From Hypanus sabinus (lineage: Eukaryota): a DNA stretch of 33,345 bases. Position numbers and translations under genes: made by a program. The notes under the pieces are model-generated. The model did not search any database, was not told where the DNA came from, and saw nothing but the letters and a program-made list of their open reading frames with translations. This document shows, in pieces, positions 2,891 to 33,345 of this stretch. How positions within the stretch are numbered: position 1 is the first letter of the stretch; every line of letters begins with the position of its first letter. Where the stretch lies: the NCBI RefSeq assembly GCF_030144855.1, contig NC_082734.1:7130001-7163345 (forward strand), in the 5' to 3' direction.

Positions 2891-5800
2891 TAATGTTTGA
2901 AACGTTCCTTTACTTATATCCTTCCTTGGAAGAAGATATATAGAAAAACCCTGAGACGTGTAGGTTCTTCAACAGGTGAAGCTGAAATGATGAAAGGTAC
3001 AATATTAAAACCTTCAACTAAATATTTTAAATACAGTAGTACCAATCCTTTACCATTGGGATAATGACATCCACTGTGCAGCTTCTTTCCTCACCCAGTT
3101 TATAGTCCAGCTCAGCTATTGTTCGCTCTTCTGTCTTCTGAGACAATGAGCATAATGTCCTTGATAAATGTTGCATTGCAATTCATAATAGCGAGTTCTA
3201 GATAACACTGGACAACATTTTTTTCGAAAGTTTGGCTTCCTCAGAATTTTTTTTGTTTATGATAGACTTCTTGTATCTGAACACAAATATAATTCTTGTA
3301 TCATGTAGGAATTTGGAGAAACAAGAAGTTAACTTTTATTGAATATAAATAACTTTGCAATAACTCAACCAAGCCAAAAATGTCTTGTAGATAATTTTGT
3401 TTGTACTCAGTATCTGAGGCTTCTTGCTTAAGTGTCTAACAATAATCAGCTAGCATTGATGGATTCCAGTTGCCCTGATACAGTTTCTCCATGACCAGAA
3501 AGTCCTGGTGAAACTTTTCACCGTGCTCGTCGCTGACAGCGCCAAGATTTGCAGGGAAGAAGTCTAAATGGGAATGCAGAAAATGAATCTTTAGTGACAT
3601 GTTGCACTTCATGGTTTTGTATGCTTGAAGCACCTTGTCAACCAGCTGCACATAGTTTGGTGCTCTGTAGTTGCCAAGAATATTTTCAACAACATCCTTG
3701 AATGCCTTCTTTGCGATTTTCTCCAGATCCACTAGAAGTTCTTCCAATTGCCTGTCATTGATGACCTATTTGATTTGTGGCCTTCCTTAATCTTGGCATT
3801 CTGACTTGAATTATGAATTAAAATAACAAATATAGGCAATTTCAAATACAATGGTGTGTGGAAGGGAAATTTCAGGATAATTTTCATGATCAGGGGCCCA
3901 AAGTCCATGAGGTACACCCAGAGGTATTCAGGAAACAAAATCTTAGTTGTCCTGCATAATTAAGACTCATTAGGACCAGTACATTTTAGTCCAATTAAAC
4001 AGCAATCGCCTATTTTGCCAGACAACACAATAGCAACCAACAATTTACAAGGCATTAGTGTAAATGGCCATGAACAATCAGAATCAGGTTTAATATCACT
4101 GGCATATGTCATGAAATTTGTTGATCAACAATTAGCAGAATGGTCACCTGCAAATGTCAACAATCAAACTTAAATGTGAACATTTGAACAGACTCAATAA
4201 TCCACAGAACAAGGAGATCAGGAAAGACCATTTAACGGATGTTGTGCAGGGACAGGGTATTACATCTGAGTGAGTTTTGTTGAGAAGCTGGATAGCGACA
4301 GGAAAGAAGCTTCAAAGATGACGTGTAATGCTGGTGATGATAGACTTGCAGCGTATCCCTGATGGCAGTTTGGTGAATCGGTGACCTCTAGGGTGGGTGG
4401 AGTCAGCAGAAATTTTTCCGGCTCTTTTCTTCGCTGTGACTATGAACAGGTCTTTTACTGTCGGTCGCTGACAGCCAATGATCTTCTCTGTTGAGTGGGC
4501 TGCTCACTGCAACCTGGACTAGGAGAGGGAAGAGTTGGCGGGAAACCAAACAGTGATAGAGGTGGTCACAACACTCATCAGGCAAGATTAAATTAATCAG
4601 GATATGTCCTGAACTGGCATAGGAAGAACAGCCTCAACTGGGATTTCATTGTACTGTTTTGGTAATGATAGTCCCCAAGAATTTGAATAGCTCAGCCACA
4701 TACACAGCCTGATCCTTAATTTCCAGGGGTGGTGCTGGTAGGGGGTTGTCAGTGGAAGTCAATCCGTATTTCCACTCTCTTGATAACATTAAGCTCCAAT
4801 ATGATATGAGCACACCATGTTGCAAGATGCATCTTTTGATGTATATCATATTGGTCTTGAGACCAATACAGTCATGTCAACTGCAGACTTTAGGATATAA
4901 ATGGATTTGTCTGGAAGTACAGTCATTTGTATAAAGTATGAACAGGAGGGGTGAAAGAACACATCCTTGGGGAAAGCCTTTGCTTATAGAAATTGGATCA
5001 GACAAGCAGGAGCCCAGCCTTACATACGCCTTCCTTTCTTTTGGCCCTTCGAGCCGTGAAACCCAGCAACCACCCAATCTGACGAAGGGTCTCGGCCGGA
5101 AACGTCGACAGTGCTTCTCCTTATAGATGCTGCCTGGCCTGCTGTGTTCCACCAGCATTATGTGTGTGTTGTTTGAACCACCCAACAAGCCCAATTTAAC
5201 CTTAACCCAATCGTGGGACAATTTACAAAGACCAGTTAACCTACCAGGTACATCTTTGGGCTGTGGGAGGAAACTGGAACACCTGGGGAAAACCCACGCA
5301 TTCCACAGGGAGGATGTACAGAGACTGCTTACAGAGGGCACTGGGACTGAACTCCAAGCTCCGATTCCCTGAACTGTTAGAGGATATTTCTACTGTGCTG
5401 CCCCAGAAATTTTTGGCAAGTCTAGCAATTGTTGCCCATTTCCAGACTCGATGGGCCAAACGGCCTAATTCTGCTCCTCTGTCTATGGTTTTGTGTCATT
5501 TGAAGGGTAATTTGTTGGACTGTATCATCATTGAATGTCACATTACTATGTCTGGAGTCTTATACAGACCAAAGAAGGTGGCAAATTTATTCCTCTTTTA
5601 AACAAAGCTAGTTCTGTGCTCTTTAACCACAAGTCTGGGTTTGCTTTATTAACCATGCTTATATTTGCTAGTAGGCATTGTGGAACTGGAATTATGTTAC
5701 CAGATAATAGTTTAAACTAGATTAGTACTCCACTAAACCATGATCTGTACTCCGTGTGCATGCTCAGTAGAGCACTGAACTTTGAATTCTGAAACAAACT

Positions 5801-17800: not shown

Positions 17801-20800
17801 ACTTATCTTTAAATTTTTGATTACAGAGTGGTATACCTTTATGTGTTATGCTATAACATTTTGATCAATTTTATTACAATATATGTACACAAGTTATGTT
17901 GAGATGTATCTATGTGTTGCACTCTGTAAATCTTGTTTTTTTTTTCTTCTGAATAAAAATATTGTAAAAAGAAAAGAAAGGACTGTAAGGATGGAATTGC
18001 TATTACCAGGCACAAAAATTTCTATGAAGGATTTTGATATTTGAGACAGATGCTTCCCAGAATAACTGATGCCAAGATTAAGAAAAGCATTTTTGTTGCT
18101 CCACAAATCAAACAGGTCATCTACAGAGCACCATACTACATGCAGTTGGTTGAAAGCATGCTTCAAGCATATAAAACCATGAAATGCAACATGTCGCTAA
18201 AGATTCATTTTCTGCATTCCCATTTAGACTTCTTCCCTGCAAATCCTGGTGCTGTCAGTGACGAGCACGGTGAAAGGTTTCACCAGGACATTGCAGTCAT
18301 GGAGAAACGGTATCAGGGCAACTGGAATCCATCAATGCTGGCTGATTATTGTTGGACATTTAAGCGAGAAGCCTCAGACACTGAGTACAAATGAAAATCA
18401 TCAACAAAATATTTTAACTTAGTTGAACTATTTCAAAGCATCAGCACTATTATGCAATTAAACTCATTATATCCAATAAAAGTTAATTTGTTGTTTCTCC
18501 AAATTCCTACGTGATATAACTAGTCTGAAATTGTAAGGCAACACGAGTGAATCTGCAGATGCTGGAAATAAATAAAAACACAAAATGCTGGCAGAACTCA
18601 GCAGGCCAGGCGGCATCTATGGGAGGAGGTAGTGACGACGGGGGTAAGGTTGGAATTAGAGCAAGGGGTGGTGAAGGGGTCTGAAATTATATTTCATCTT
18701 ACATCTTCAAGCAGTCTATCATAAAAAAAAAATTATGAGGAAGCAACACTTCTGAAAAAATTTGTTGTCCAGTGTTAACTAGTTGATGTTTGCTGTTGTT
18801 CCTTTGCGCACTTTATGGTGCATCGGGCGGCGACCTTGCCATTTCTTTAGCACTTTTGACTTTATTTTTAAACGAGGCCGAGTTGCTAGCTTGATGCTCA
18901 ACCCAGCACAGATGGAAAGAGTGTAAGGAGCTGGCCGGATTCAAACCCAGGACCACTCGCCTTGAAGTCTAATGCCGATGTCACTACACCACCGGCCAGC
19001 AAATTAGCTAATTAGCTCATCAAAATCCTCACGAAGGGTCTCAGCCCAAAACATTGATAGTTTATTCCTTTCCATAGATGCTGCCTGATCAGCTTCTCCA
19101 GCGTGTGTGTTGCTCTGGATTTCCAGCATTCTCAGAATCTGTTTTGATTAGCTAATAATCAGCTGCTTTTGAAATCTTTACAAACAACATTCTCCCACAA
19201 AGTAATTATAACAAGGTTGTGCTAGTTAAGACTAAATGGTATTTGCACTTACTCTGTAGTTAACATCTCCCATTGTTTGTTTACAGGAGACCCTGAGAGT
19301 GTTGCTGGGGAGTATGGTCGTCACTCCCTGTATAAGATGCTGGGTTATTTCAGCTTGGTGGGCCTCCTGCGTCTCCATTCACTGCTTGGGGATTACTATC
19401 AGGCCATTAAAGTGCTTGAGAACATTGAACTCAATAAAAAGGTATGTTTCATTTTATTGATATTGGATATTCTACTGATTGAAATAACACTTGTAAATGT
19501 CAGAATCAGGTTTAATATCACTGACATTTGTCATTAAATTTGTTTTGCAGCAGCAGTATGGTGTAATACATAAAATCTATACATTACTATATATAGTAAT
19601 AAGAAATATAAGTGCAAAGGGAAAAAAGTTGAAGTAGGATACATGGGTTTATTGTCCATTCAGAAATCCGATGGCAGAGGGAAAGAAACTATTTCCGAAA
19701 CGTTGAGTGTGTGCCTTCAGGCTCCTGTACCTGCTCCCTGATGGTAACAATAAGAAGAGCGCATATCCTGGGTGACGAGGGGGCAATCACAGTAAATACA
19801 AGAAACACAATAGAATCAATGAGGGATCACACCCAACAGGATGGACAACAACCAATGTGCAAAAGGAAAATAATAATAAATAAGTAATAAATATCAAGAA
19901 CATGAGATGAAGAGTCCTTGAAAGTGAGTCCAGACAAGTGGGAACAGTTCAGTGATGGGGCGAGTGAAGCTATCCTCTCTGGTTCAAGAGCCTGATGGTT
20001 GATGGGTAATAACTACTCCTGCCACATATGCTTGTAGTGATCACAGCAGATAAGAAGTAGAACAATCATTAATCAGTTGTCCTCGCAGCGCCCTGATCAA
20101 GGGACAATGTCACAAATCGGTAATTCACAATGTCTTGCAGATTAGTAGGGAACTAGATTGCTCAAAGCTGTTAAATGGATTCTTGCAAACAAATACGTGG
20201 TTTAGAAAATAGTGAAAGCATTGTTATAAAGATATTTGAAGTCTGGTGTTTGGTTCCATTACAGAGTATGTACTCACGAGTACCAGAATGTCAAGTCACG
20301 ACCTATTACTACGTGGGCTTTGCCTATTTGATGATGCGCCGTTACCAGGATTCGATCCGCGTGTTTGCCAATATCTTGTTGTACATCCAGAGAACCAAGA
20401 ACATGTTTCAGCGCTCAACCTACAAATACGAAATGGTAAATCATTGAAATGCTTGTGATAAAATTAGAAATATTCAACAGTTCGGACAACATCATACCTG
20501 AATCTATGACTCTACATCTCAATGTACATCAGCATCTGCAGAGTGTAATACTGTGTCATTATGATATCAATATGAAGATCATAAAGATGTTTAATCCAAA
20601 TGTTTGAAATTTTTTTTAAAAACTTAGAAATAATTGCTTCCAGATTTAGCACCTAGAACATTACAGCTCAGTACAGATCCTTCAGCCCACAATAATGTGC
20701 CAAACTTATTAACTACTTTAAGATCAATTTAACCCTTCCCTCCTATATAACCTTCCATTTTTCTATCGTCCGTTTGCCTAAGAGTTTCTTAAAAGCCACT

Positions 20801-27271: not shown

Positions 27272-27321
27272 CTAACTTTTATTGTTTAAGTCAACTTGTG
27301 TCAGTCAAAAAATTCTTTATG

Positions 27322-27909
27322 ATGATTATGATGGCATCCGTCTGTCTTGAAAGGCCTGGGCAGACGGTATGGAGATCCTGGGGCACCCAGTCGTCCCTCG
27401 GCCTCACCAGTGTAGTCCAATGGAAAATAAGGCAATACGTTTGACACCGGCCTAGCTGCAGGAGCTGCCAGAAGGATGTTCAATGATGTCCAGGCGCCTG
27501 AGGGGCTCCACTCCAGATTTTCTGTCTGGGTTTACTCCCATAGCCTTCGTCTCTCCCAAGGCCACCCACAAGGCAGTGGGGCTATCTACCCATAGCTGGG
27601 GATTTGGTTCACGAGCATCAGGCATGTCCACATGCCGGTGGGCCCCCATGCTACATGTGAAGGGGCCAGACCTATGCTCTGTCCTCTGTGGTTCAGCCCA
27701 AGTCCGAAATGAGTTCAGTTTCTGTGTGCCACCAGCGAGGAGGCACGATATTAGGCTTCCTGTTGCAGAGGCTACATACTGACAGGGAGAAACTCTCACA
27801 TTCAGCTCTCCTTTTCGCAAGACTGCTAGCCAGCGGGTGGAAGCGAGAAACGAGAGCAACAACCACTACCCAACCACACTTGAAGCGTCACAACCAGCGT
27901 TTGACACAC
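27322..27909 (-). mobile_element. Non-autonomous bipartite RTE-derived element (5'UTR plus 3' end)
   Basis: TSD aaaaat(t)ctttatg (27308-27321 / 27910-27922); RTE-type 3' end tcaagacagacggatgcc followed by an (atc)n tail. Confidence 0.7.
27683..27909 (-). ncRNA. Decayed HDV-like (nested double-pseudoknot) self-cleaving ribozyme
   Basis: P1 GTGTGTC/GGCACAC, P3 GCC/GGT, L3 TCCTCGCT, J4/2 CTGA; P1.1 GG reads AG and P2 is only partly paired. Confidence 0.5.
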
Positions 27910-28629
27910 AAAAATCTTTATGTACCTCTGCTATAGGCCCTCACAGTTTTGTACACCTCTATCAGGTACACTCCCAAGGAATTGGGTGGCATGGTAGCAT
28001 AGTGGTTAGCACAATGCTATTGCGCCCGTGACCCAGGTTGATTTTAAAAGCACATTTATTATCAAAGTGTGTATACATTATACAATCTTGAGATTCGTCT
28101 CCTTAAAGAAGTCCAAAAGTATGTAAAATACCCAATGCAAAGGGGGGGTACAAATTGCACTAACAATAAAAGTAAGCAAATGTCATTTAGAATGAAAGTG
28201 GGTCCTCGGACATGAAGCCCAGAACAGGCCACAGCCTCGGCCTCAGTTCAGTACACAGCAGAGTGAACATCACAGAGCCAGAGCGGGCCTCTGCTTCAGT
28301 GCAGCAAAGAGCAGAGTGTTTGTCGTGGATCAGTGGGCAGAACTGGCCCAACCCTCGCCTCTGGTCCCAACACGCTGCCTTTTCAATCCACCTGTCCCAG
28401 CATTTAAATTGTCCAAACATTGGGTCGTCCCTCTCTCTAAGACCCGGACACATCGATTCGCTCTGGTTCTGGACCCCGCCGCCACGTTTGCATTGTCTGT
28501 AAACAGTTCTATGTTCTCCTCACGACCACGTGGGTTTCCCCTCTTGTACTGCAGTTTAATCGGTCCCGTGAGTGTAATTGGGCCAAAGGGGCCTGTTACC
28601 GTGTTGTATCTCCGAATAAAAAGTAAACT

Positions 28630-32641: not shown

Positions 32642-32945
32642 CATGAGAGTAGAATCAGTCCATTCTGCCCCTTTCGATCATACCTGGTATATTTTCTTGC
32701 TCAATTTCATTCTCTTGTCTTCTCCCCGTAACATAAAGAGCCTAGCAACTTCCGCTCTAAATATACCCTCCACAGCCATCTGTGGCAATGAATTCCACAT
32801 AATCACCAACCTGTGTTCACCAGGGACGTCCTTCTATACTGACTGCGCCATCGATACTGGACTCTTCCAGCATCTGAAGATTCCTCTCCATGTTCACTTC
32901 GTCTGGGCCTTTAAATATTTGGTAGACTTCTCTGAGTTCTCGTTT
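32642..32945 (-). mobile_element. CR1-type LINE 3' fragment
   Basis: ELREVYQIFKGPDEVNMER; reverse of LVIMWNSLPQ. Confidence 0.65.
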
Positions 32946-33345
32946 TCTCTCTCTCCCTCCCTCCTCCCACTCTTTCTCTCCCTCCCTCCTCCCACTCTTT
33001 CTCTCCCTCCCTCCTCCCACACTTTCTCTCCCTCCCTCCTCCCACTCTTTCTCTCCCTCCCTCCTCCCACTCTTCTCTCCTCCCACTCTCTCACCCTCCC
33101 TCCTCCCACTCTCACTCCCTCCCTCCTCCCACACTCTCTCTCTCCCTCCTCCCACTCTCTCTCTCCCTCCCTCCTCCCACTCTCTCTCCCTCCCACCTCC
33201 CACTCTCTCTCCTCCCTCCTCCCCCACACTCTCACCCTCCCTCCTCCCACTCACTCTCCCTCCCTCCTCCCACTCTCTCTCCTCCCTCCTCCCACTCACA
33301 CTCTCCCTCCCTCCTCCCACACTCTCTCTCCCTCCCTCCTCCCAC
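32946..33345. repeat. Polypyrimidine minisatellite, ~19-25 bp unit (CTCTCTCCCTCCCTCCTCCCA), truncated by the window end
   Basis: Tandem copies directly visible. Confidence 0.95.

Follow-up and report, generated by a model that had tools for sequence, protein, structure and literature searches.

A probable HDV-like ribozyme head in a short non-coding retroelement family of Hypanus sabinus, seen through one decayed copy and its family consensus

Whether a short, non-coding retroelement of a cartilaginous fish begins with a self-cleaving RNA of the HDV type, and whether the copy at hand could still cleave, are the questions raised by a locus on the minus strand of Hypanus sabinus NC_082734.1. 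HDV-like ribozymes are known to process the 5' ends of R2, R4, L1Tc and RTE elements (PMC3774820, PMC6765202), with 5'-junction cleavage reported for the RTE, R4 and L1 clades (PMC3774820). The stretch of DNA analysed here (the window) is 33,345 nt long, and a first-pass annotation of it had proposed an ORF-less element of about 590 bp, bounded by a TSD of 13-14 bp and headed by an HDV-like ribozyme whose cleavage site coincides with the element's first nucleotide. The element and its borders are as follows:

27910 to 27922, minus strand: 5' copy of the TSD, CATAAAGATTTTT, with G27909 possibly part of the TSD
27322 to 27909, minus strand: whole retroelement copy, 588 bp, non-coding
27306 to 27321, minus strand: 3' copy of the TSD, CATAAAGAATTTTTTG

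The TSD was seen at the proposed place with a length of 13-16 nt (CATAAAGATTTTT(G) at 27922-27910 and CATAAAGAATTTTTTG at 27321-27306); of random pairs of pieces taken from the same repeat-rich window, 1.1% attain its local alignment score of 12. Because G27909 may be a letter of the TSD, the 5' end of the element is known to +/-1 nt. Three parts could be distinguished between these borders: the ribozyme head (27909-27683), a shared and very abundant module (about 27634-27403), and a tail that ends in ...CCATCATAATCAT. The longest minus-strand ORF in the element region has 136 aa and no Pfam match, no RTE coding remnant was found inside the element, and ARAGORN detected no tRNA-like head anywhere in the window; the picture of a TSD-flanked element of 588 bp that lacks a recognizable ORF was upheld. 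Orthologous contigs share the 5' junction in two related organisms (A and G) and the 3' flank in three (A, B and C), with about 96-97% identity at either side, which shows the insertion to be old and present across species. What the locus preserves is most likely the head, now decayed, of a single old copy of a short non-LTR retroelement that has no ORF. The orthologous contigs of B and C carry 26 extra nt at 27351 (GAACAATGGAGTTATGTGACCTTTCC, plus strand), in the element's 3' part; this is a between-species indel inside the fossil copy.

All parts of an HDV-like fold are present on the minus strand of the head, in the order P1 - J1/2 - P2 - P3 - L3 - P3' - P1' - P1.1 - P4 - J4/2 - P2', which makes a nested double pseudoknot:

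27903 to 27909, minus strand: 5' strand of P1, GUGUGUC; cleavage predicted immediately 5' of ribozyme nt 1 (G27909)
27756 to 27902, minus strand: J1/2 insert, 147 nt
27745 to 27755, minus strand: 5' strand of P2, CCUAAUAUCGU in the window and CCUCAUGUAGU in the family consensus
27731 to 27744, minus strand: P3, L3 and P3', GCC / UCCUCGCU / GGU, with GGC in 38-59% of family depth
27724 to 27730, minus strand: P1' strand, GGCACAC in the window and GACACAC in the family consensus
27722 to 27723, minus strand: 3' strand of P1.1, AG, with GG in 19-33% of family depth
27697 to 27718, minus strand: P4 hairpin, weak, UUUC loop on a stem of 9 positions of which 2 are mismatched
27693 to 27696, minus strand: J4/2, CUGA, with C27696 the putative catalytic cytosine
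27683 to 27692, minus strand: 3' strand of P2, ACCACAGAGG in the window and ACUACAGAGG in the family consensus

Every sequence feature on which the annotation had relied was recovered in place. The first seven nucleotides of the element, GTGTGTC (27909-27903), pair with GGCACAC (27730-27724) at 7/7 positions, one of them G-U, exactly as claimed, and they are the sole 7/7 complement of P1' within 245 nt upstream of P2. The first pair of P1 is G-C; HDV and CPEB3 have a G.U wobble there. The claimed succession of P3, L3, P3' and P1', and with it the claimed match to the HDV genomic core, was likewise confirmed, as GCC-TCCTCGCT-GGT lies at 27744-27731 and GCCTCCTCGCTGG agrees at all 13 nt with the HDV genomic ribozyme printed in bioRxiv 10.1101/025023; for the stretch GCCUCCUCGCUGG the identity with that ribozyme spans 13 nt, or 14 nt where the family has C at 27731 (38-59% of depth). 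A 3-bp P3 closing an L3 with the conserved U...G and the P1.1 cytosines is present and identical to HDV genomic. Within P1.1, G27722 pairs with C27740 of L3, and C27739 stands opposite A27723. The weak P4 (-2.4 to -3.3 kcal/mol), the putative catalytic C at 27696 and the only partly paired P2 described in the annotation were all seen: C27696 comes directly after G27697 of P4 and is followed by UGA, so that J4/2 fits C-N-R-A, and P2 of the window copy makes 7/10 pairs (-1.9 kcal/mol). With three P2 pairs lost, the window copy is most likely an inactive fossil by the modelled pairing, and the annotation had likewise judged this copy to be probably inactive.

Taken by itself, the generic HDV fold of this single copy is not significant and not convincingly beyond chance. 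Rfam returned no HDV-type match for the whole window at gathering thresholds or for 851-nt and 101-nt core stretches at E<=10, where the output was noise only (e.g., PVT1_3, uup, HOTAIRM1_3). The 147-nt J1/2 together with unmodelled pseudoknots could account for this silence, but by the measure of the curated models the locus still failed. Minimum free energies were unremarkable against shuffles (z -0.84 for the whole fold, and z -0.3 and -0.9 in further whole-fold and 3'-core comparisons). A home-made HDV descriptor was used that demands a 3-bp P3, an L3 reading U[CU]CNNG, one or more P1.1 pairs, P4, CNRA and P2, as well as a 7-bp P1 within 250 nt. In 10 Mb of dinucleotide-shuffled sequence, this descriptor matched 54 loci when loosened to the present copy, or about 0.36 per window, and 6 loci at consensus grade.

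These matches to shuffles, the silence of Rfam and the unexceptional fold energies all favor a reading in which an ordinary non-autonomous retroelement carries an HDV-like string and some complementary segments and was never a ribozyme. The low complexity of the GT/AC-rich 7-mers points the same way, as does the finding of the exact pattern GCCTCCTCGCTGGYGRCACAC (the 21-nt core plus P1') in two JGI metagenome contigs. Both of these contigs are GC-rich and apparently bacterial, and their candidacy as copies of the family was rejected, the matches being judged chance; viral contigs contained no instance of GCCTCCTCGCTGGYGRCACAC. Such a reading is nevertheless unlikely in our estimation, as it needs several independent coincidences, including an identity of 13-14 nt with the HDV core and a P1' that, placed right after this core, matches exactly the first 7 nt defined by the TSD; a 10-bp P2 and better P4 and P1 helices, moreover, emerge only when the family consensus is considered. 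Since the generic fold hits shuffles often, the weight of the argument rests on the 13-nt HDV identity, on P1 at the TSD junction and on the consensus repairs.

The family was followed in Logan contigs of five related organisms (A, B, C, D and G) at 80% likeness to the stretch. The region 27683-27867 belongs to a highly repeated family common to the five, and a 260-nt stretch of the head was matched by 540-745 contigs per run in four runs. RNA runs were searched as well, and none contained the head. Contig depth reaches very high values over 27403-27634, remains high over 27693-27837 and drops to single-copy level outside 27316-27873; within the window itself, no second copy was found by blastn (word size 7) or by repeat search. 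This depth and the TSD mark the element as a member of a dispersed, repeated, non-coding and TSD-flanked family. Several paralogous contigs have 27622 joined to 27767 or 27797, or 27513-27556 joined to 27753-27799; these contigs are internal-deletion variants without the 3' half of the ribozyme. A protein search with the 136-aa ORF gave one 96-aa product, on an ENA metagenome contig of 536 nt (L001), of which positions 95-330 share about 236 nt with the module 27403-27634 around CCACTGCCTTGTGGGT...GGGAGTAAACCCAGACAGAAAATC. The 5' side of L001 is unrelated (a different head) and its 3' continuation is different as well, which suggests that 27403-27634 is a module of several repeat families. A 63-aa peptide of the antisense frame of the consensus had no match among predicted proteins, and a literature text search for the module's conserved strings gave no match.

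Comparison of the window copy with the majority states of this family provided the principal evidence on the fold. The differences are given as minus-strand changes relative to the window copy, with their share of family depth, and the last two are minority states:

27729, minus strand: G>A in about 97% of depth; P1' becomes GACACAC, perfectly Watson-Crick with GUGUGUC
27747 and 27690, minus strand: C>A in 63-82% and C>U in 62-88% of depth; a P2 C.C mismatch becomes A-U
27749, minus strand: A>G in about 90% of depth; P2 A.C becomes G-C
27752, minus strand: A>C in about 95% of depth; a new C-G pair in P2
27710, minus strand: A>C in about 95% of depth; P4 A.G becomes a C-G pair closing the loop
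27731, minus strand: U>C in 38-59% of depth (minority); P3 G.U becomes G-C and the HDV identity extends to 14 nt
27723, minus strand: A>G in 19-33% of depth (minority); GG at P1.1

All six majority differences within 27683-27755 lie in predicted helices. They raise the number of standard pairs from 24/31 in the window copy to 28/31 in the consensus, and that of Watson-Crick pairs from 21 to 26, in what is a comparison of copy with consensus and not true covariation. Registers slid by 1-3 nt gave 9-14/31 pairs and gained nothing from the consensus. With random bases at the same six sites, 2% of trials equalled the observed gain in standard pairs and 0.3% equalled that in Watson-Crick pairs, and six random sites reached it in <0.01% of trials. 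The annotation had made the restoration of a paired P2 by the consensus a check of its proposal, and this is what was found: P2 has 10 pairs in place of 7 (6 bp, an A bulge and 4 bp), its energy falling from -1.9 to -11.4 kcal/mol, and P1 and P4 are improved as well. C27696, P3 and P4 (bar the majority change at 27710) show no family variant of 15% or more, and L3 has one variant, G27736>A, in 8-35% of depth. From this modelling it is probable that an HDV-like ribozyme headed the source element of the family, its J1/2 long and its P2 extended, the window copy being an inactive fossil of that element. The interpretation put forward in the first-pass annotation was thus supported in part.

The part of that interpretation that fared less well concerns P1.1. 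A consensus GG had been looked for there, and GG does occur in 19-33% of family depth, but the majority (67-81%) has AG. The annotation had explained AG by CpG decay (CGG>CAG); no TG product of 15% or more is seen at 27724, and the CA/CG split therefore looks like subfamily variation and not plain CpG decay. Sense-strand variants of the G>A type occur at 27723, 27730 and 27736 (19-33%, 5-25% and 8-35%), with no neighbouring C>T of 15% or more. These G/A variants in the core could reflect subfamily structure, or possibly strand-biased deamination of cDNA.

In having G1-C37 and AG at P1.1, most copies depart from the HDV canon. The P4 helix has little stability, and P1 (-8.5 to -9.1 kcal/mol) has to compete with a 5' hairpin of about equal strength formed by nt 3-25 (-8.8 kcal/mol). 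In L1Tc, the same 77 nt serve as promoter and ribozyme (PMC3383444). From these observations one could argue for a conserved but non-catalytic structured 5' element, HDV-like by descent or mimicry, with a role in stability, protein recognition or promoter activity. The parts that are kept in at least 85% of depth, G27736>A (8-35%) aside, are the catalytic ones, namely L3, the geometry of P3 and the cytosine of J4/2, and the 5' end of the element at ribozyme nt 1 is as cleavage predicts; a purely non-catalytic role is for these reasons highly improbable.

The outermost 5' end of the head raised a separate question. Paralogue alignments end by 27873, and at 80% likeness none of them covers 27874-27909, so that a real HDV-like core might have had its cleavage site and P1 elsewhere, for example at GUGUGGU (27879-27873) or in copy-variable sequence, the match at 27909 being accidental or a copy-specific extension. 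GTGTGGT at 27879 pairs 6/7 with the consensus P1'. Beyond 27836, however, about 160 contigs per run share one continuation, AGTGCTTGTCGCTCTCACTTTCAGCTTCCA (minus strand), which is identical to the window at 23/30 positions (about 77% over 27867-27838); the family accordingly runs at least to the equivalent of 27867, with a window copy too diverged to align, and with this level of identity the 80% cut-off alone can explain the absent alignments. A P1 placed elsewhere is very unlikely, since no 7-mer other than 27909-27903 pairs 7/7 (with Watson-Crick pairs throughout when set against the consensus P1'), since this 7-mer lies directly at the TSD, and since the first 30 nt show no sign of a tandem duplication. 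The proposal that the first 30 nt duplicate the next 30 in tandem, which would set the family start at 27879, was rejected, with an alignment P=0.23 against shuffles and nothing found by TRF.

A possible rod within J1/2, pairing 27898-27869 with 27787-27759, would join P1 and P2 by linkers of 3-4 nt (AAAC and AAG), as in large HDV-like ribozymes, and is improved by three consensus changes. It was rejected as not significant (P=0.07-0.39; duplex z -0.19 in the window and -1.57 in the consensus; MFE-gain P=0.13).

The preferred reading, a ribozyme-headed source element, can be set out as a series of predicted steps. The first approximately 227 nt of the source would adopt the fold of a large HDV-like self-cleaving ribozyme, with P1 formed by nt 1-7, a 147-nt J1/2, a 10-bp P2, a P3/L3 identical to that of HDV, P1' following P3', one or two pairs in P1.1, a weak P4, and a CUGA J4/2 that contains the catalytic C. 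The element would be transcribed within a longer transcript, which the ribozyme is predicted to cut 5' of G1, and RNA starting at G1 would then be copied into new sites by the reverse transcriptase of a presumed partner LINE. The outcome would be TSD-flanked copies that begin at ribozyme nt 1.

The large drz-Agam-2 ribozymes are assigned to RTE elements. In Agam-2 ribozymes, J1/2 forms a large domain and P2 is lengthened to about 10-12 bp (PMC4908430), and this large RTE-type architecture is shared by the fold predicted here (PMC4908430). The spacing of P1 and P1' in R2 ribozymes ranges from 23 to >700 nt, with a highly variable P4 (PMC3774820), and fast natural ribozymes tolerate a non-Watson-Crick second pair in P1.1 (PMC13635239). 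Judged by these analogies, the oddities of the present fold (long J1/2, extended P2, AG at P1.1, weak P4) fall inside the known range. RTE-clade 5' HDV-like ribozymes were described by Ruminski et al. (2011, J Biol Chem 286:41286), as relayed in PMC3774820 and PMC6765202; as in those RTE ribozymes, the putative ribozyme here comes first in the element and its predicted cleavage is at the 5' junction of the element. RTE elements are promoter-less and are processed from co-transcripts (PMC6765202, PMC3774820). Unlike RTE systems, the element described here has no ORF, a cartilaginous fish host, a 147-nt J1/2 of statistically unsupported structure and a G-C first pair in P1.

Non-autonomous elements are also described as using HDV-like ribozymes (PMC6765202, PMC3774820, PMC3414825 and PMC3383444). 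Closest in form are the R2 SIDEs (PMC3414825) and NARTc of Trypanosoma cruzi (PMC3383444, PMC3185411), which are short, non-coding and ribozyme-headed, as predicted for the present element. Both are described as keeping the 5' HDV-like ribozyme of the parent LINE and depending on the parent's proteins, and they differ from the present case in belonging to the R2 and L1Tc/ingi clades of insects and trypanosomes. R2 and the SIDEs are site-specific in rDNA; the element here has an ordinary TSD and intron-like surroundings rich in repeats.

The HDV genomic ribozyme itself resembles the present head in its P3-L3-P3' (13 identical nt, or 14 in about half of family depth), in the order of its helices and in J4/2, and differs in having a J1/2 of 4-5 nt, a G.U first pair, GG at P1.1, a strong P4 and a viral setting with no retroelement context. 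Where R2 active sites are nearly identical to that of HDV, the likeness has been ascribed to convergence (PMC3774820), and the exact HDV-type core found here provides a further data point on whether deltavirus and retrotransposon ribozymes reflect common ancestry or convergence (PMC3774820). That this core, in a family common to several elasmobranch species, stems from shared descent or transfer between vertebrate retroelement and deltavirus ribozymes and not from convergence, with the AG and GG forms of P1.1 marking subfamilies tuned to different cleavage rates, is a speculation to which we would give little credence.

Among vertebrates, the reviews mention an HDV-like ribozyme of lamprey, from structure-based searches, and the R2 ribozymes of zebra finch, and few other vertebrate examples beyond CPEB3 were found in the literature searched; no publication linking HDV-like ribozymes with cartilaginous fishes was found there. 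The trick itself, of elements cutting themselves from longer transcripts, is known, and by analogy with it the present family would be a new example and not a new mechanism. If the family ribozyme was active, ribozyme-headed retroelements would reach the cartilaginous fishes, in a high-copy non-coding element, and the defined 5' end of a promoter-less short element derived from host transcripts would be explained. Young, sense-oriented intronic copies would then be potential self-cleaving sites in pre-mRNA. The locus itself, as an old, broken fossil common to related species, is of little import.

Several other features of the window were observed in passing. Just upstream of the element lies a fragment of an extremely abundant SINE (27983-28040, with summed contig depth up to about 1.5e5); the boundary of this SINE family is sharp at 27983-27985, and a tRNA-like continuation (...CCAGCGACCCGGGTTCAATTCC) is present in the loose ends behind 28018. 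An ORF of 154 aa at 4880-5341 on the minus strand gave a weak RVT_1 match (E=5e-4, below the Pfam cut-off) and is probably a LINE remnant unrelated to the ribozyme element. An inverted repeat of 279 nt, 90% complementary and with arms 14.4 kb apart (3395-3673 and 18118-18396), is probably one repeat present twice, the copies facing opposite ways. Tandemly repeated units of about 25 nt fill 32897-33339, at the right end of the window.
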